The notes beneath the pieces are model-generated. The model did not search any database, was not told the DNA's origin, and saw nothing but the letters and a program-made list of their open reading frames with translations. A stretch of DNA of 55,571 nucleotides, counting the filler, from Bipalium vagum (lineage: Eukaryota): NCBI GenBank assembly GCA_037834085.1. It is 3 parts of 3 records of this genome, joined end to end, with 100 filler letters (N's around TTAATTAATTAA, not from the genome) between each part and the next. Parts side by side here need not be neighbours in the genome. Positions count along the whole stretch, not along the records: positions 1 to 16,514 come from JBBMKC010107319.1; 2 more parts are not named here. One strand, written 5' to 3'. A program made the translations under genes and the position numbers. Each line of letters starts with the position of its first letter. Position 1 is the stretch's first letter. Of the stretch, positions 1 to 12,519 are shown piece after piece.

Positions 1-599
1 TTACTAGTTTTCTATTAATGGTAACTTGATGTTACCATAATATTATTTTTCTTTAAAATATAATTTATAAGTAAATACATAAAAAATAAATGAATGAATA
101 TAATCACTACTAATACTAATACATGTTAATACTATATCTTATCTTATTTATTAATCCTAATATTCATATATGTCATTATTATACCTTTATTATGCTATTT
201 CATTTCCTTTTGTTTATTATTTATTATTATTATTTAATTATCGTTTTATTTTTAATATTTTATTAATCAGTCAAAATCGATTTTTCTTTTAATACATGTA
301 TTATATCGAATAAAAAGGCAATACAATGCCACGAATAAAAGTAATACAATAATACAACATTAAGGATCACTACAGGATGTCAAATGTTTCAGTTAAAGAA
401 TCACAAATATATAGAAAGGATGTCACATGTTTCAATTCACTAATCACCTGGAGGGATTGGGACTGACGGAACCGATGGTGATGGTTTTGATAGATTGGTT
501 GGATTCGGTCGTAGTCTCCACAACTATACTGACAAAATTTATTTATTTTCTTGTAAAAAATAAATGAAATAACATTTATTTAGACAATTTTTATTACAA

Positions 600-800
600 A
601 AATGAAGTTTTTTTCTCAAATACATTTGGGTACAATTTAATCTTCTTCTTGAATGCAAATAACCTGTTATTGAAAAATCTTTCAGAGTTTCTATAGGTTG
701 CAGGAACAGACAGCACTTAGATACTTTTCTTAAAAATTAAGGAAAATACTTCGTTTTTAATCCATAAAAATTTTCATCAAAATTTCCCGTTGAACAATTT
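600..800 (-). mobile_element. Decayed hAT-superfamily transposase C-terminal (dimerisation domain) fragment
   Basis: Minus strand reads KYLS..LSVPATYRNSERFFNN across frameshifts, matching the hAT dimerisation motif L-S-x-P-A-T-S-x-x-S-E-R-x-F-S. Boundaries approximate. Confidence 0.5.
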
Positions 801-1590
801 CTAAAACCAAATTAATCTCTTTGGTCAAAGGCTATTCTTTCAAGAATATATCAGGTTTCTCAAATTTCCTATTTTTTGCATTAGACTCAATAGATTCTTG
901 TTTTGATGTTTGATATCTAGTGTAAGCTGTTTAATAATAAATTGATCATTTTAAAAAAATCTTGATAATCTTCTTGGTGATGGGCCAGATGCCTTTTAAG
1001 TGCTGTATTGTGCTTGTCTTTAGGTCAAAATGTTATCTATTATATCATTTTTAGAAAATTAAATAAGAAATATATATGTTCGCTTACGGTTAATAAATTG
1101 AAAATCAAGAATAATATTACTGTAATTCTAACTGATTAAGTCTAAGTCATGACCTATATTAAAATTACAATTAGGTCGGTATTTGACCGACTTACATCAT
1201 TGGTGATAATAAATGTAGAAAATAGAATAAAAGAAAAGGATAGATATGATTCTTCGTCAATTCTCATGACAGGAAATATTTGAACATTAAAAATTTGAAT
1301 TTGAAGATGTTTAAAAATTTTAAAAAATCTTAAATGAAATGGTAATATTAAAAAAACGTGTTAGGTTTTTAAAACGCACAAACCCTAAAGATCGTGAGTG
1401 ATAATAATAATAATAAAACTACTAATAATTATTAAAAATGTTCTTTTACTATAATAAAATAATATTTATAATAATAATTTATCAAAATCTTGCAGTCGAG
1501 ATAATGATATATTTATATAAATCAATTAATATTACAAAAATAAAATATTATTATTTATTATAAATTATTATTTTTTTACTAACTTTACTA

Positions 1591-2200
1591 AACTTTATCT
1601 CGGCGTGAAGATAAAGTTAGAATTTATTGGCTATTAGTGAAAATAACCGTCTACGGCTATTTAGAAAGACGCTATCTCCAGAAATTTGACCAAGATATTG
1701 AAGTTGAACTCTGAGAGAGCATTTTCAATTCAATTCAAGTTCGAGGAAAGATTAATGGATGAGCAATTCAAGAAGATTTTATCCATAATTTTTATTTTAT
1801 TGATGACTAAGCAAAAGGATTTCGCAATGGGATCCAGGGATCTTGAGAATCATCAGGTGACCTGCAAATGACCAGATACACACTGTCGCTCCGGGTGAGA
1901 ATATTTTTGATTTTTCTTGTTTTTCATTTCTCTTACATTTTATTCTAATTTTATTTTGTTTTAATTACATTAAAATTTGTTTTAATCATATATTGTTTCA
2001 TTGTTCATTTGTGTTTTATTATTAACTTGATGATTATTAACATTGATTTTTGATTATTGGGAATCGATTATAAACCTTATTCAGACATTTAATCAGTTTT
2101 AATTCTTTGAATTTTCAGAAATTTTATTTTGATTGGTGTTACTGCATGTGATTTTGTTTTAAGAATAATAAAGTTTTATTGTGATTGTTTTGATTCAATT
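1591..2200 (+). repeat. Decayed copy (A) of an LTR-like interspersed repeat, homologous to 15325-15851 in opposite orientation
   Basis: Collinear shared blocks with the reverse complement of 15325-15851: tatctcggcgtg.agata; ctacg.ctat...agacg.ctat; ggattt.gcaa.ggga.ccag.ga.cttg.gaa; tgtcgctc..ggtgaga, then a T-rich tail. Right boundary approximate. Confidence 0.6.
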
Positions 2201-2697
2201 TGGGGTGTAAATAGAGCTAAGGCTTTATTTTGGAAGTTTAAATTTATGTAGCTGTAAAAGTAAAACAAGCACAACATTAGAAAGTGAAAAGTTTGTGGTG
2301 ACAAACTAAAGTTACATATTTCGATTAAGGAAAATAGTAAAAAATGAATTTTCATTTTTAAGGATAAAATAAATTATTTTTAATTTTATTAACAATTACT
2401 TTGAATAAAATATTCATATTTTTTGACTTTTAAAAGTAAATGTTAAATTTATTTTATAAAAAGCCTTAAGTAGCATAAACATTGTTATTTTAAAAAATTC
2501 AAAATGTCTTGTTATTTTTTTTATATTTTTGTTTATAATTGAGAAAGTTAATTATCATATTTAATGATCTGATATCGTTCCTCTATTAGTAAAACTTTAC
2601 AATTGTTCAAAGAGAGAGGTGGAGTTAATTTTAAAAAATTAAAAATCATCAATTATTATAGGAAAATTTTGAAAAATATTTGTTTTTGAATTTAGAA

Positions 2698-5600
2698 ATG
2701 GAAAAATTTATTATTAGAGATCATCCAAATAATCAATTGGATAATACTAAAACTGAAGAACTATTGGATTTTGTTGAGGGAGAAATGACTTTTGCAATAT
2801 TGAAACCTAATATCATAAAGAATAATATAATGGGAAAAGTATTAGACCGGTTGAAAGAAGAACATCTTGATATAGTCAAACAAGAAATTAGGAATCTTAC
2901 AAAACAAGAAGTTTTACAATTATGTCATAATTATGAAAAAAATAAAGATGAAATGGTTCAACAAATGACTTCTGGCAAGTGTTGCATTATTGCTTTGAAA
3001 TCAGAATTTTCCAATCCCGTTTTACATTTGAAAGAATTGACAGATCCAACAGATACGGGAATTCAAAAAAATACCGAGGAAAATAATAAGAGAATGAATG
3101 AGATAAAAGATTTGCAAAATAAATATTCGTCTGCTTCTGGGATTTCATCGATTAATTCAATTAATTTATCTCCCGAGTCATTGTCTAAAAGACTTGATAA
3201 AATAATGGATTCTGATAATAAATCTATAAGTAATCCAGATAATGTCAAATCAATTTTTGAAATTTATGATTTAAGAAATAAAATTAATGAGGCTGAAGCA
3301 AATAATGAAATTATAAAATGTATCTGGATCACGTTTCCTGAATTGGAAATTAAAAAATCCGAAAAAGGCATAAATTTTCAGTCAAAAACAATTCTTAACC
3401 CAGACATTTTAAAATCTATCTCTATACCGGAACAATATCAAAAACCAATTGGTTTATTTCAATCAAATAATGAAACATTAAATGAAATATGGATAAAGTT
3501 TCCTGAATTAATTTTGAAAAAGTCACATAAAGGAAAAGATTCTGAGTTAACAGTCTTAGCGAATCCAGGAAATCTCCAAAAGATCTATAATAATGTTATA
3601 TTTCAAAAAGGAATTATTACAAAAAAATACTATGGTGAATCTTTCAAATCGATTTTTATAAATCCTCCGAAATTGGTTTTCAAAAAAAAAGATGAAGCCA
3701 ATAATTTTGATACTATAGAAATATTTAATTTGGATAGTCTAAGAGCAATTTTTGGAATGCAGGAATTTCAAGAACAACTTCATTCGGCTGAAACAAGAGG
3801 TGAAATTTTAAAATCTATTTGGATAAATTTTCCTGATGATTTGAAGTCAAATGGGTTGGTGGATTATGATTCCATGAAAGCCTTTAATCAAGATAGTTTA
3901 AGAATACTTTGTAAAATGAAAGAATTTCAAAATGAAGTCAGTTCCTCTGAATTACAAATTGGATCTCTAAAATCAATTTACATAATATTTCCTGTTATGA
4001 TGTTTAAAAAGAATATTGACAATAAAAGTGATTCTGAAACAAGTATCACACTTAATTCCAGTAGTTTAAAAGCTATTTACAGAATGGAAGAATTTCAAAA
4101 AGAAGTAAGTTCTCAGGTGGAGTCCTTAAAATCAGTTTCTTTAACTTTTCCTGAATTGATATTCAAAAACTCCGAACAGTCAAAAGAATCTGTAAAATCA
4201 TTTCTAGTAAGTCCAAGTAATTTAAATTCTATATATGGATCACAGGAATTTCAAAGTATAACCAATTCAGTCTTATCACAAGCGGAATCAATAAAATCTA
4301 TACAAATAACGTTACCTCAACTGATACTGAAAAGTGTTGAAAAAACAGAACAAACAGAAATTAAATTTATAATAAACCCAGATTTTTTAAGTAATATATA
4401 TAGGGCATCTGATTTCCAAAAGAAAATCAAATCAGCTGCTTCACGTGGTGAGATATTAAACTCTATTTGTATGACATTTCCTGAAATGGTATTCAAAAAA
4501 GCGGGCAAGTTTAAAGATTCCAATATTAAAGCTGCTCTTAATCCAATTATTCTAAAAACGTTATATGAAACTAAAGAATTTCAAAAGGCAATTTATTCAA
4601 TTGATTCTTTGAAGTCGATATTTAAAACTTTTTCTAATAAAACAAAGACACCTGAGAAAATTAAAAAATCAGATATTAAAACACTAATTAAGGAAAAGAA
4701 AGTTATCAATGAGAATGTGAAATCAGTGTTTATTACATTTCCGAATTTGGTTATCAAAAAATCTGACGGAGTCAAGGAATCGGAAACTGAAATCACTCTT
4801 AACCCAGAAATTTTACGAACAATATACGGAATGAAAGAATTACAAAAAGAAATTCATTCAATTAATTCGAAGGATGAGATCCTGAGATGTGTTTCTATAA
4901 ATTTTCCTACATTGGAATTACATACATCTGATAATTCTAAGAAATCTGAAACTAGAGTTATTGTTAACATGGGAATTCTGAAACAAATTTATGAAATGCA
5001 GGAAATTCAAAAAAGAATGTTATTAGCTAAATCACGTAGAGAGTCTTTCAAATCTATTTACTTGCCTTTTCCTAAATTGGAATTTTATAAATTTGAAAGT
5101 TCCAAAGATTTGATTACTAAAACCATAACTAATCAAAATGGTTTAAGATCAATTTATGGAATACAAGAATTTCAAGAAAAAATTCATTCTATTCAAACAT
5201 CAGATAACGCTGTGAAATCTGTTTTGATAACATTTCATGATGACTCGAACACCACAAGATCTTTGGATTTTGATCATCAACAAGCTATGAAGCAAGACTG
5301 CTTAAAAGAACTTTGCAATATAAAGGAATTTCCTAAAGAAGAAAATTCATTAGAGCCTAAAGTTGAATATTTAAGATCAATTAATGTAAAATTTCCTGAA
5401 ATGTTGTTTAAAAATCCATATAGAAATATTGATTCACGGTCAAAGGTTGCACTTAACTCTAAAAGCTTGAAATTAATTTACAGAATCGAAGAAGTTCAGA
5501 AAGCAATCCATTCTATGGAATCTAAGGGACAATCTTTAGAATCTATTTCGATAACATTTCCGGAATTAGTGATAAAAAAGTCATACCAGAATAAGGAGTA

Positions 5601-8600
5601 TGAAACTAAAATCATATTTAATCCTAATTATTTAACGAGAATTTCCGAAACAATTGAAATCCAAAATGAAATAAATCGGGTTAATTCTAATGGTCAGCAT
5701 TTGAAATCTATTCTTGTAACATTTCCTCAATTGGGTTTCAATATTAACAATTCAGAAAATAAAACAATGCTTAATCCACATATTTTAGAAGACATTTTTG
5801 TGACCAAAGAATTTCAGAAAGAAATGTTTTTAGCTAAGTCACGAGATGAGTCTCTGAAATCGATCTTGATAATTTTTCCTGAGTTAGTTTTCATGAAAGA
5901 TGGAGTGTCTAGTGGTTCGGAAATTAAATTTTATATTAATCCCCGTATCCTAAGATCAGTATACGAAATTCAAGATTATCATAAAATTATTGATATATCT
6001 CTAACAAGTAGTAAATTACTGAAAGCAATGTGGATAACGTTTCCAGAATTAATATCAAGAACAAATAAAGATTCCGAGAAAAAAGTTATTCTTAATCCAG
6101 ATTATTTGAAATCGATTTATGTAATGCAAGATTTCAAAAAATTAATTAGTTCAATGGAAATTCACGGAAAATCATTGAAATCGATGTATATAAATTTTCC
6201 TAAATTGGTTTTAGAGTCGTATGATCTAGAAAAAAATTATGAAGAAATAGCCATACAGAATCCGGATAAATTGCAAACTATTTATGACATGGAAGACTTT
6301 CAAAATGGAATCATTTCAGCAAAATCACGCGGAGAGTCTCTTAAATCCATTTGTGTACATTTTCCGAAATTGGAGTATTGTAAATCTGGCCAATTCAGAA
6401 GTTCAGTTACTAAGCTAATAATTTGTCAAAATAGTTTAAGATTAATTTATGAAATGCAGGAATTTCAAGAAAAGCTTTATTCAGCAAAAGTAAGAGGTGA
6501 AGTTTTAAAATCTGTTTTGATAACATTCCCTCATAGTCCAAATAAAATTAGATCTTTGGATCTTGATCTTAAACAGGCCATTAAGCAAGATAGCTTAAAA
6601 GAAGTTTACAAAATGCAAGAATTCAAAAACGCTATTAATTCTTCTAAATTACAAGCGGAAGATTTACATTCTATTTTAATAACTTTTCCGGAAATGGAGT
6701 TCAAGAAAACTGATGATCTCATTAATTTTGATAACAAAGTTGTGCTCAATCCAGACTATTTAAAAGAAGTATTTAAAATGGAAAAATTTCATGAAAACAT
6801 CATTTTAGCTGAATCTCGAGGTGAAACCATAAAATCTATTTCAATAAACTTTCCTGAAATGATTTTAAAAAGGTTTAATCAAGATCAAAATGATGAGACC
6901 AAAGTTGCTCTTGATCCAGATAGCTTAAGAGCAGTTTATGGCATGAAAAACTTTCAAAACAGAATTAACTCAATTGAAGCAAAAGATGAATCTTTAAAGT
7001 CATATTTGATAAAGCTATCGGAAATTGGGTTCGTAGGGAAAAACAAAAACGGCGATTTTGTGTCTAATGTAATTGTTAATCCGGAAAGTTTACGAACACT
7101 TTATTTAATGCCCGAACTTCGACAGACAATCCATTCAGCTGAATCATGTGGTAAAGCTTTGAAGTCGATTTGGATACTTTTTCCTGAAATGGTTTTTCAG
7201 AAAAATGATGGAGATCAACATTCTGAAAATAAAGTTACATTAGGGCCAGATTTTTTGAAAGCAGTGCTTGAAATGCAAGAATTTCGTAACGGAATTAACT
7301 CAATTGGCTCAAATAATGAGTGTTTAAGATCAATTAATATAACATTTCCACAATTGGTATTGATAAAATCAAACGAGATTAAGGAATATGAAACTAAAGT
7401 TCTACTTAGATCAGAAAATTTACAAAATATTTATGAAATGCAGAAATTTCAAAAAGAAATAAAATCAATTGAATCGAGCGGTGATAGAATTAAGTCAGTT
7501 TTGATAACGCTTCCTGAACTGATAATTGAGGAAGTCACAAAAGGCAAGAATTCTGATATCAAGTTCATACTGAATCCAGACGATTGTAAAAAAATTTACG
7601 ATATGCCAGATTTTCAAAAAGAAATTATCTCAGCTGAATCCCGCTGTGAAACACTAAAAGCCATTTTAATCAATTTTCCCAAAATAAAATTTAAAAACTT
7701 TGATCAAGAAAAAGATATCTTGACTAATTACATTGTTCATCCTGGTAGCTTAAGGAAATTGTACGAAATGGAAGAATTTCAAGAACAAGTTTATTTAGCT
7801 AAATCACGAGGTGAAGTTTTAAAATCGATTTTGATAACTGTTCCTGATGAGCCGAAGTTCAAACGATCTGTGGATCTTAATCTAAAACAAGAAATTAAAT
7901 ACGATAGTTTAAAAGTATACGGAATGCATGAATTTCAGAAGGCAATCAATTCATCGAAATCACTTTTATCTTTATCATATTTTATCCATATAAAATTTCC
8001 AGAAATGAAATTCAAAAAGAATGGTGACCTCAAAGATTCTGATACTAAAGTCATTCTTAATTCGGATTGCTTGAAAGAAATATACAAACTACCAGAGTTT
8101 CAAAATATGATTAATGTAGATTCATCTGTTAACGATTCTTCTAAATCTGTTTTGATAACCTTTCCTGAATTATCAATAAAAATGACTAACCAGGTTAATG
8201 ATTCTGATAAAATAATAACCTTTAATCCAAATAATTTGAGAAAAATTTCCGGATTTCAGGAATTAATAAAAGCTTTTCTTTCAGCTGAATCAAACGGAGA
8301 ATCTTTCAAATCAATTAACATAAAATTTCCTAAATTAATAATCACAAAAACCGAAGGATCTAAAGATTACGAAACTACGGTTGTTCTTAATCTGGATAGC
8401 ATAAGATCAATATATGAATCAGATGAATTTGAAAATTTGTCACTTGAATCGTTAAAATCAATTTCCATAAGATTTCCTGAATTGATTATAAAAAAGAGTA
8501 ATAAAGAAAAGTCAGTAGAGAAAAGAATTATTCTTAATCCAGAAAGCTTAGAGAAAATTTACGAATTACAAGAATTTCATGAAAAAATCAATTCACCTGA

Positions 8601-11600
8601 GTCTAGAGGTCAACTTTTGAAATCAATTTGTGTGAATTTTCCTGAACTGGTTATTAACTTTTCTGCCGATGACAAGGAAAGTGAAATTAAAATAATTCTT
8701 AGTTCAGAGGAGTTTACAGCCATATACGGAATGCCAGAATTTCAAAAGGAAATTTTTTTTGTGGAATTAAAGGGTGAGTCTTTGGAATCAGTTTCTGTAA
8801 GTTTTCCTACATTGATATTGCAAACATCTAATTCCAAAAAGGAGTTTGAAACTAAAGTAATACGTAACATGGGGATTTTGAAACAAATCTATGAAATGCA
8901 TGAATTACGAAAAGGACTTTTATCAGCAAAATCACGTGGAGAGTCTCTCAAATGTATTTTAGTGCCCTTTCCAATTTTGGAGTTCTATGAATCTGATAGA
9001 TCCAAAGGTTCGATTACTAAAGCCATAACTAGTCAATGTAGTTTAAGATCAATTTACAAAATGCAGGAATTTCAAGAAAAAAGTTTTTCAGTTGAAACCC
9101 AGGGTAAAGCTTTAAAATATACTTTGATTACAAATCAGGATAATTTAAAGTTTAAGGAACCTTTGAATTCTGATCTGAACAAATTAATTAGTGAAGATAG
9201 TTTAAAAATAATTTGCAAAATAAATGAATTTCAAAAAGATATGAATTCTTCTAGACTTCCTATCGAATCTGTAAAATCAATTATAATTACGTTTCCTGAA
9301 ATGATTTTTAAAAATATTGATACAAAAGCTGAATCCGAGACAAAGGTCATACTTAATTCTAATATCTTAAAGGTCATTTGTGGAATACCAGAATTTCAAA
9401 GCTTAGTGGACTCAATTGAATCACGGGGTGGAAAGCTAAAATCAATTTCTATAACGTTTCCAGAATTGGTGATAAAAAAGTCTAAAGAATTTGAAACTGA
9501 AATCACAATTAGTCCAGATGTTTTAAGTACAATTTGCGAAAATCAAGATTTTCAAAGTATTGTTAATTTAATTGAATCTCAGAGTGAGTGCCTAAAATCA
9601 ATTATGGTAAGGTTTCCTGAATTGATAATCAAAAAGTCCAATCAACGCAAGGAAGAAACTGAAACTAAAGTTATTCTTAACCCAAATAGTTTCAAAAATA
9701 TTTATGCATTGCAAGATTTTCGAAATGAAATTAATACAATTGAATCTGAAGTTGAATGTTTGAAATCATTTTTGATAAAGTTTCCTAAAATGAGTTTTAA
9801 CAAATTTAATCTTGAGAAGAGTGAAAATGCAAAGGTCATAATTAATCCAAGTACTTTGACAGGCATTTATAAATCAAAAGAGTTCCAAAAAACATTAATT
9901 TCAATCCAATCTAACAACGGGTCCTTAAAATCAACTTTATTAACTTTTCCTGTCATAAAGTTAAAAAAGTTGAAACAATCAAAGGATTCTGAATTAAAAA
10001 TCATTATTAACCCAAATAATTTAAAAGAACTTTATGAAATGAACGAATTGCAGAAAGAAAAATTTTTGATAGAATTTCGGGGTGAATCTATAAAATCCAT
10101 ATTGGTAAATTTTCCTACAATAACGTTGAAAAAAACAGATCAATCAAACGACTCTGAAACCAAAGCTATCCTTAATGCACAAAGCTTGAAAAAAATCTAT
10201 GAAATGCAAACTTTTCAAAAGGGAATTTATTCTGCTGAATTGCGCGGTGAGTTTCTTAAATCAATTATTATTAATTTACCAAAATTGATGTACAAAAATA
10301 ATAATAACACAGATAGCTCTCTAATTACAAATATAATTAAACTGAGAAGTTTAAAATCTATTTACGAAATGCAAGAATTTCAAGAAAAAATTATTTCAGC
10401 TGAATTAAGTGGTGAAACCTTGGACTTTGTTTTGATAACTGTTCCTGGAAATCAGGATTACATGGGATCTTTGGATAGTAAGGAAGATAGCTTAAAAGGA
10501 GCTTGCAAAATTAAAGAATTTCAAAAGATAATGAATTCATTTGAATCAAAAAATGGACAATTTGAATCTATCAATGTATCTTTCCCTGAATTAGTTTTCA
10601 AAAAATCTAACTATGAAAATGATACCGAGACTAAAGTTTCACTTAATCCAAATAGTTTAAGAGAAATTTATGGTATGCAGGTATTTCAAAACGCAATTAT
10701 TTCATCCGAAAATGGAGGAGAATCTTTAAAATCTCTTTGTATAACGTTTCCGGAAATTATTCTAAAGAAATCAAACAATGGTAAAGAATCTGAGTCCAGA
10801 ATTTTACTAAACCCAGAAAGTATAAAAGATATTTATGAATTACAAGAATTTCAAGAAGCAATTTATTTAGCAGAGGCAGAAAATATGTCCATAAAATCAA
10901 TCTATATAAATTATCCTCAACTTACTTATAAGAAGACCAATGACTTCAGCAATCAGCAGAAAATTATTATTTTGAATCCAGATAGCCTAAGATCAATTTA
11001 TGAAATACAAGATTATCATAATCAAATTGACTTGGCCAAATCTCGTGGCGAATCCTTAAAATCAATAAATTTTAATTTTCCTAAGCTTGAGTTTAAAAAG
11101 ATTGATCAATCTGTGTACCCTGAATCTACGGGGATGCAAATATCAGATAATTTAAGACCAGTTTTTTTAATGCAGAGTTTACCAAATGGAATTCAGTCAG
11201 CTGATTCTCGCAGCGAGGCTCTCAAATCAATAAACCTTACTTTTCCTGATTTGGTGGTTAAAAAAGAGAATCAATCCATAGAATCTGAGACTACAGTTAT
11301 TCTGATCCCAGAAACAATATATCCTGATGAGAAAAATTCGTTTGTTAATCAATTCAAGACCGCTGGTCTTAAGATTGTCAATCAGGTCAATATACCAATC
11401 TTAAAAAATGATATAAATTTTTTATATTCAGATTTGAGCTTTAAAAAAAATGTGAGTGATGAAAAAATTAAAGAGCTTCAAAATTCTAATTTTGATATTT
11501 TCATGGTCAAAGGAAATAATTGTGTAAAAATAGTAAATTGTATGTTAGAAGTAAATTTTCCAGAAAGCATAAATAGAGAGTACAGCAAATTACTTGACAG

Positions 11601-12519: not shown

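Follow-up and report, generated by a model that had tools for sequence, protein, structure and literature searches.

Proteins of the NME8 type are defined by a thioredoxin (Trx) domain followed by three NDK domains (NDPk_TX), and the Schistosoma japonicum 'thioredoxin domain-containing protein 3 like' sequence (P0009) is an example of this type from a flatworm. The catalytic histidine of an NDK lies in strand beta4, within the motif N-x-x-H-G-S-D. Nebulin, a giant protein, is composed of 35-aa modules which form super-repeats of seven modules matching the thin-filament period. For NME8 and NME9 no kinase activity has been reported, and the family is axonemal (PMC2777172, PMC13256974).

Here, we analysed a window of 55,571 nucleotides from the genome of Bipalium vagum (GCA_037834085.1), the whole stretch being three parts joined by filler; positions 1 to 16,514 are contig JBBMKC010107319.1 (C107319), on which the locus described below is found. 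We consider it, with a probability of about 0.6, to encode a non-catalytic, selectively maintained paralogue of axonemal NME8 that would have originated by retrocopying and a two-step amplification and would act as a scaffold on ciliary or sperm microtubules. Our literature search found no description of an NDK-derived repeat array.

Coding frame, domain layout and family

The sole ORF of at least 100 aa on the 16,514-bp contig covers positions 2680-12519 of the plus strand and contains a complete single-exon coding frame (2698..12519) of 3273 codons plus stop, counted from the ATG at 2698. A candidate polyadenylation signal, AATAAA, was read from the sequence at 12589..12594 (+), 70 nt 3' of the stop codon. 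The encoded protein has a computed mass of about 377 kDa and a pI of 7.8, and a sequence scan revealed neither a hydrophobic run as long as 18 residues nor a signal peptide-like or membrane segment. Scans of the contig against Rfam and for tRNAs found nothing. Its GC content ranges from 22 to 34%, with 28% in the ORF stretch, and the local rise to 34% is due to an interspersed repeat of ~500 bp at 15347-15850; a first look counted 2,594 candidate copies of this element in the genome, the 40 that were scored being 75-95% identical, and it had no tRNA or Rfam match. The contig end is occupied by AT-rich micro- and minisatellite tracts, (ATT)n and A-rich (15869-16133 and 16430-16511). Contig C258523, which carries part of the paralogue described below, likewise ends in an AT-rich satellite tract, and such tracts are the likely causes of the assembly breaks.

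The protein opens with a 28-aa leader that matches no domain. It is followed by the N-terminal two thirds of a first NDK domain (NDK1; 2782..3060, aa 29-121), which matches positions 1-93 of the 135 positions of the Pfam profile PF00334 (E 4e-11; 43.5 bits at a gathering cut-off of 27) and was modelled by AlphaFold with a pLDDT of 86-96 over aa 30-110. After a spacer that includes a degenerate partial unit (3088..3201, aa 131-168; pLDDT <50), the repeat HMM delimits an array of 50 units of ~55 aa each (3202..11277, aa 169-2860), which makes up 82% of the protein length. The array runs into NDK2 (11278..11670, aa 2861-2991), whose strand beta1 is the partial 51st unit and whose C-terminal third is degenerate, and NDK2 is followed by a full-length NDK3 (11671..12096, aa 2992-3133) and a C-terminal tail of 140 aa without known domain (12097..12516), all on the plus strand. 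Two further PF00334 matches were located within the final 472 aa, a C-terminal region that scored 113.5 bits (E 9e-33), so that the Pfam comparison proposed in an earlier sequence-only reading did recover NDK domains at both ends. That reading had laid out the 9.8-kb frame as NDK1, repeats, NDK2, NDK3 and a tail. Frame, NDK parts and tail were confirmed; the array, however, does not lie between intact domains but extends from within NDK1 to within NDK2. In a protein feature search, the tail gave a lead to a PyrI zinc domain (0.83), which was rejected because the paralogue has not kept the Cys pairs; the same search with the repeats gave no lead.

Aligned to NME8/TXNDC3, the protein presents three tandem, collinear group-II NDK domains, of which NDK1 is split by the array and obtains its C-terminal third from unit 1. 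When 1.84 billion representative proteins were searched by phmmer, a query of five units, NDK2, NDK3 and the tail returned 2,290 relatives. The named top relatives that we sampled, from chytrids, Schistosoma, a mollusc and a sponge, were all TXNDC3/6 with the exception of one 'nucleoside diphosphate kinase', and the best named animal match was the Schistosoma TXNDC3-like protein. Word-indexed protein searches with the C-terminal 397 aa or the whole protein had found no match, which we ascribe to their word and length filters, since phmmer found these relatives. Placement of the protein in the thioredoxin/NDK (NME8/TXNDC3/IC1) lineage is thus supported by sequence similarity. The earlier label 'NME8/NME9-like' holds for this lineage, the best matches being TXNDC3- or TXNDC6-named, but not for NME9: NME9 is eutherian-specific (PMC2777172), and the proper label is therefore 'NME8-like'. 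Thioredoxin was found neither in the ORF by Pfam nor on contig C107319 with the N-terminus of Schistosoma TXNDC3 as query; the same query does find the Trx domain of the paralogue, and only 2.7 kb precede the ORF on the contig. We would classify the protein as a paralogue in the NME8 family that lacks Trx and carries a novel internal array. The repeat array is absent from the best 150 of the 2,290 relatives, the long ones among which are chytrid proteins of five to seven complete NDK domains, in line with the earlier statement that no family member with such an array was known.

Origin of the repeat unit

Using an HMM seeded from the window, we counted 50 units of 45-63 aa with a mode of 55, plus the partial 51st unit that forms strand beta1 of NDK2; about 50 repeats of 55 aa had been estimated by eye. 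Identity among units is 17-64% at the amino acid level (mean 36%) and averages 57% at the DNA level, with a maximum of 78%, and all differences in unit length are whole codons. Because the units have diverged to this degree, Tandem Repeats Finder did not detect the array at the DNA level. A genome-wide search found the repeats nowhere else in this genome.

The units are not equidistant from each other. Units that are 8, 16 or 24 positions apart share an identity of 0.40-0.41, compared to 0.34-0.37 at other offsets, and the mean over all offsets that are multiples of eight was 0.411 versus 0.355 in shuffled order (z = 12; none of 5000 shuffles reached the observed value). The same period is marked by a variant unit that has a replaced linker and beta1 part and occurs at units 5, 14, 22, 30, 38 and 46, starting at 3841, 5239, 6544, 7849, 9154 and 10447. 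Together, the variant units (3841..10611, plus strand) mark six super-repeats of ~1.3 kb (~435 aa) each. This pattern indicates that a differentiated block of eight units probably came first and was amplified about six-fold afterwards.

The consensus of the unit aligns collinearly, and with spacing preserved, to the final third of a group-II NDK: it contains, in this order, the Kpn-loop Pro-x-Ser-Leu-Arg-Ala-x-Tyr-Gly, the strand Asn-Ala-x-His-x-Ser and a helix ending in Phe-Phe-Pro. Another 20 residues complete the unit and correspond to the linker between the domains plus strand beta1 of the NDK that follows. This correspondence was recovered by several profile comparisons. The repeat HMM, built from the window only, matched the NDK C-terminal third in 113 of 150 NME8-like proteins (the best 150 of the 2,290 phmmer relatives), all in one register, the lowest domain E being 3e-6. 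With hhalign, an alignment of 40 units scored against 280 external NDK domains with a probability of 88.7% (E 2.6e-6), unit columns 9-46 being placed on NDK columns 104-141. In the reverse direction, an NDK HMM that contained no window sequence picked up ~20 units. A search of PDB sequences with the unit profile gave NME5 chains as three of the top four matches, in matching register and at a weak E of about 0.1. Finally, in comparison to 22 TXNDC3-like proteins with MAFFT, the last unit covered, with no gaps of its own, the C-terminal third of their NDK1, the linker and strand beta1 of NDK2; MAFFT also aligned unit 1 where NDK1 lacks its final third. The search with the repeat HMM for an already described family of this architecture, as suggested by the sequence-only reading, returned none among these 150 proteins, its matches being the C-terminal thirds of NDK domains.

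At the level of alignments, these comparisons show that the unit combines the C-terminal third of NDK1 with the linker between the domains and NDK2 strand beta1, and that it is not a foreign insert. Judged by its ends, the segment that was repeated corresponds to the junction of NDK1 and NDK2, with a proline at either cut, and for this reason the array has its start within NDK1 and its end within NDK2. When 40 single units and three repeat segments of 600-1000 aa were compared to Pfam-A, only scattered sub-threshold matches occurred, with no NDK among those of the single units; the homology was therefore accessible to profile methods only. A match of the repeats to 5_nucleotid_C above the cut-off (35.9 versus 23.6 bits) was dismissed, as no matched stretch passes singly.

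An intron-bearing paralogue and the history of the array

The same genome contains an intron-bearing paralogue with a Trx and three NDK domains, distributed over contigs C258523, C218908 and C255874 (loci L033, L039, L013, L014 and L017). Its Trx exon is located at C258523:5609-5938, 3.4 kb upstream of NDK1 at about C258523:9320-9679; C218908 carries the junction and NDK2, and C255874 carries NDK3 and the tail. Compared to the giant protein, the paralogue is 45-63% identical over the main matched segments (NDK1, junction, NDK2, NDK3 and tail), with 52-76% in the tail, which is common only to these two genes and matches no known domain. The lone junction exon of the paralogue matches the repeat HMM (E 1.4e-5), and 21 residues separate its Phe-Pro motif from the beta1 proline, as in the units; 'lone' here refers to the sequence outside the assembly gap (C258523/C218908) between NDK1 and the junction.

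The paralogue has at least seven introns of ~45 bp, one of which is located in the segment equivalent to the repeat, and none of these positions is occupied in the 9.8 kb of the giant gene. The intron inside the segment implies that amplification took place in an intron-free copy. As the giant gene lacks introns and has no Trx within the 2.7 kb upstream, we infer a 5'-truncated retrocopy; in a copy of this age, poly(A) remnants or target-site duplications would no longer be expected. According to this proposal, the mRNA of an intron-rich Trx-NDK1-NDK2-NDK3 gene would have been retrocopied without its 5' thioredoxin part. A segment of 55 codons would then have been tandemly duplicated, reaching from Pro-x-Ser-Leu-Arg of the NDK1 Kpn-loop through beta4, alpha4 and the linker to the proline that ends NDK2 beta1. 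The segment would have grown to eight differentiated units, and the 8-unit block would subsequently have been amplified ~six-fold. In the resulting protein, 50 small alpha/beta modules would form a rod or chain of 2,700 aa, headed by NDK1 and closed by NDK2, NDK3 and the tail.

The upstream region of the ORF allows a different account, in which the ORF would form only the last, large exon of a gene that extends further upstream, with a Trx exon beyond the contig start or on a separate small contig; the protein would then be a full NME8 orthologue plus array and not the product of a truncated retrocopy. A pyrimidine-rich run ending in AG, 3 nt before the ATG, is a candidate splice acceptor, and the 2.7 kb that precede the ORF are shorter than the 3.4 kb by which Trx and NDK1 are separated in the paralogue. 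In addition, the genome contains two more TXNDC3-like Trx exons that are unlinked to NDK genes, on small contigs (C242204:896-1090 and C210390:1099-1457), one of which could supply the giant gene with its missing 5' exon or be part of a third paralogue. On the other side, the ATG is in good context, with A at -3 and G at +4, and is preceded by an in-frame TAG 13 codons upstream; a Trx match is missing from the contig; and the complete absence of the paralogue's introns fits a processed copy. We regard the longer gene as rather unlikely and retain the truncated retrocopy as the preferred origin.

Over all pairs of units, mean pS is 0.60 and mean pN 0.39, placing synonymous sites near saturation, and in the closest pairs omega is 0.2-0.45, as estimated by comparing unit with unit within the one draft genome in which the gene was seen. 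Both observations argue for an array that is old and constrained. They also bear on the possibility that the array is a non-functional relic that expanded neutrally, with an open frame devoid of selective meaning. The stretch was found in only one of the public sequencing runs and in no RNA run, and it was seen once, in a single genome, as might be expected of a relic. Against this stand 3273 stop-free codons at 28% GC, with 145-427 stops in each of the other five frames, and the exclusively in-frame indels at 57% DNA identity, along with the omega values; preservation of the frame by gene conversion is countered by the lack of a functional source in the genome. A relic is accordingly highly improbable. 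Purifying selection on the coding frame, which the sequence-only reading had deduced from the frame and its indels, is supported by this comparison of codons, and the locus very probably represents a real, constrained gene with an NDK-derived array.

At 440 Mb in 272,664 contigs the assembly is highly fragmented, and it includes several differing COX1 contigs, so that a chimeric assembly or contaminant DNA might be suspected. However, with at most 78% DNA identity the units are too diverged for mis-joining by the assembler, and a Logan contig of 10.6 kb, assembled separately from the one public run that contains the stretch and possibly built from the same reads, covers 2500-8499 with 0 differences and at even depth. 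Furthermore, the nearest relative of every non-repeat part is the intron-bearing gene in the same AT-rich assembly. An artefact or contaminant is, in our view, an extremely remote prospect. Apparent joints in the Logan contig were discarded as rearrangements, as they are cross-mappings of the one contig onto sister units.

The COX1 sequences of the assembly (C253947 (L034), C246471, C253320, C38971 and others) include one that is intact under code 9 and has 26.5% GC. The best COX1 contig carries AAA at universally conserved Asn positions, AGA at a conserved Ser and TGA at Trp positions, which corresponds to the echinoderm/flatworm mitochondrial code. Taken with the very low GC, the ~45-bp introns and the Schistosoma TXNDC3-like protein as best named animal match, this code points to a rhabditophoran flatworm as the probable host. 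Matches to a COX1 piece used as query did not exceed 79% identity. Two further partial sequences have 32-34% GC, and many copies are riddled with TAA/TAG stops; the latter resemble mitochondrial sequence inserted in the nuclear genome, or DNA from other organisms.

The locus offers a traceable case of a giant repeat protein arising from the fold of a housekeeping enzyme, with the source gene surviving in the same genome, the breakpoints of the duplication readable to the residue, and both levels of amplification preserved.

Predicted structure, possible role and known systems

In an alignment, the catalytic histidine is replaced by tyrosine in NDK2 and NDK3 of both paralogues, and the giant NDK1 lacks the corresponding segment; in the closest foreign fragment (P0010), the histidine of NDK3 is kept. 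Within the array, the column of the catalytic histidine is occupied by His in five of 49 units. Judged by these residues, it is very unlikely that the giant protein is a kinase, and the apparently non-catalytic nature of its NDK domains fits a structural role.

A four-unit model, calculated with AlphaFold2 from an alignment of 11 non-overlapping four-unit rows, reached a pLDDT of 78 and a pTM of 0.68 and displayed three consecutive strands and two helices in every unit. This predicted pattern differs from the arrangement of the equivalent segment in an NDK. A model of NDK1 with three units was confident for the NDK1 core only; in it, the helix-alpha4 segment of unit 1 was predicted as a helix, as in an NDK, rather than as a strand. 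The predicted fold of the unit is hence of moderate confidence. Comparison of the four-unit model with the PDB (Foldseek, VIA-align wide) and the ESM Atlas yielded only generic small alpha/beta matches (Z <=6.5, TM <=0.33). If the predicted module is real, a sub-domain fragment has gained a fold of its own.

The axonemal context of the family, which includes outer-arm dynein and microtubule binding, the loss of the kinase histidines and the two-level, ruler-like periodicity together led us to consider that the protein may act as a long structural scaffold, or spacer, on the microtubules of cilia or sperm. This axonemal or microtubule role, which we infer from homology, is a tentative proposal to which we give somewhat less than an even chance. 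A bolder version, in which the NDK fragment, made up of strand beta1, the end of the Kpn loop, beta4 and alpha4, would have been exapted as an autonomous 55-aa alpha/beta fold and the protein would serve as a nebulin-like ruler or tether along axonemal or sperm microtubules of flatworms, anchored by the ancestral NME8 NDK domains at both ends, appears quite unlikely. If the protein is axonemal, it would represent a new kind of long NME8-based component in a phylum with atypical sperm axonemes, and it would provide a handle on the binding targets of the non-catalytic NDK domains of NME8.

A functional structural repeat protein could also reside elsewhere, e.g., in the cytoskeleton, the tegument or the matrix of secretory granules, or act in the manner of a parasite repeat antigen. 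The Trx domain that defines the family and the catalytic histidines are both gone, and most of the protein is array, with a predicted fold that has no known counterpart; all this would be compatible with a departure from the axoneme. However, the protein is devoid of a signal peptide-like or membrane segment, and its flanking NDK domains and tail are conserved with the Trx-bearing paralogue, which suggests that ancestral partners were retained. A non-axonemal role thus seems unlikely to us, and we continue to favor the axonemal NME8 paralogue.

How does the giant protein relate to described systems? With human NME8/TXNDC3/Sptrx-2, the outer-arm dynein IC1 of sea urchins and Ciona IC3 it shares the three collinear group-II NDK domains including the linker. 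In contrast, NME8-type proteins have 580-950 aa and a Trx domain at the start, whereas the giant protein has neither Trx nor introns and holds 50 copies of the junction (2,700 aa); its identity to them is only 23-34%. The paralogue in the same genome displays the same change from His to Tyr in NDK3, but differs by its Trx exon, its introns and its single junction. Enlargement by internal tandem duplication has also occurred elsewhere in the family: chytrid TXNDC3/6-like proteins (e.g., KAJ3087275.1 and KAJ3013715.1) contain 5-7 NDK domains in 1,200-1,500 aa. Three chytrid proteins named TXNDC3/6 (P0001, P0002 and P0005) have seven complete NDK domains in 1,400-1,500 aa, an independent, whole-domain route. 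While the chytrid proteins duplicate whole NDK domains with a full Pfam score, the giant protein amplifies a sub-domain fragment that is below Pfam NDK detection. In its design, with 55-aa modules and super-repeats of eight, it may be regarded as analogous to nebulin; the two are unrelated in sequence and fold, and it is for nebulin that a match of the super-repeat to a filament period is known.
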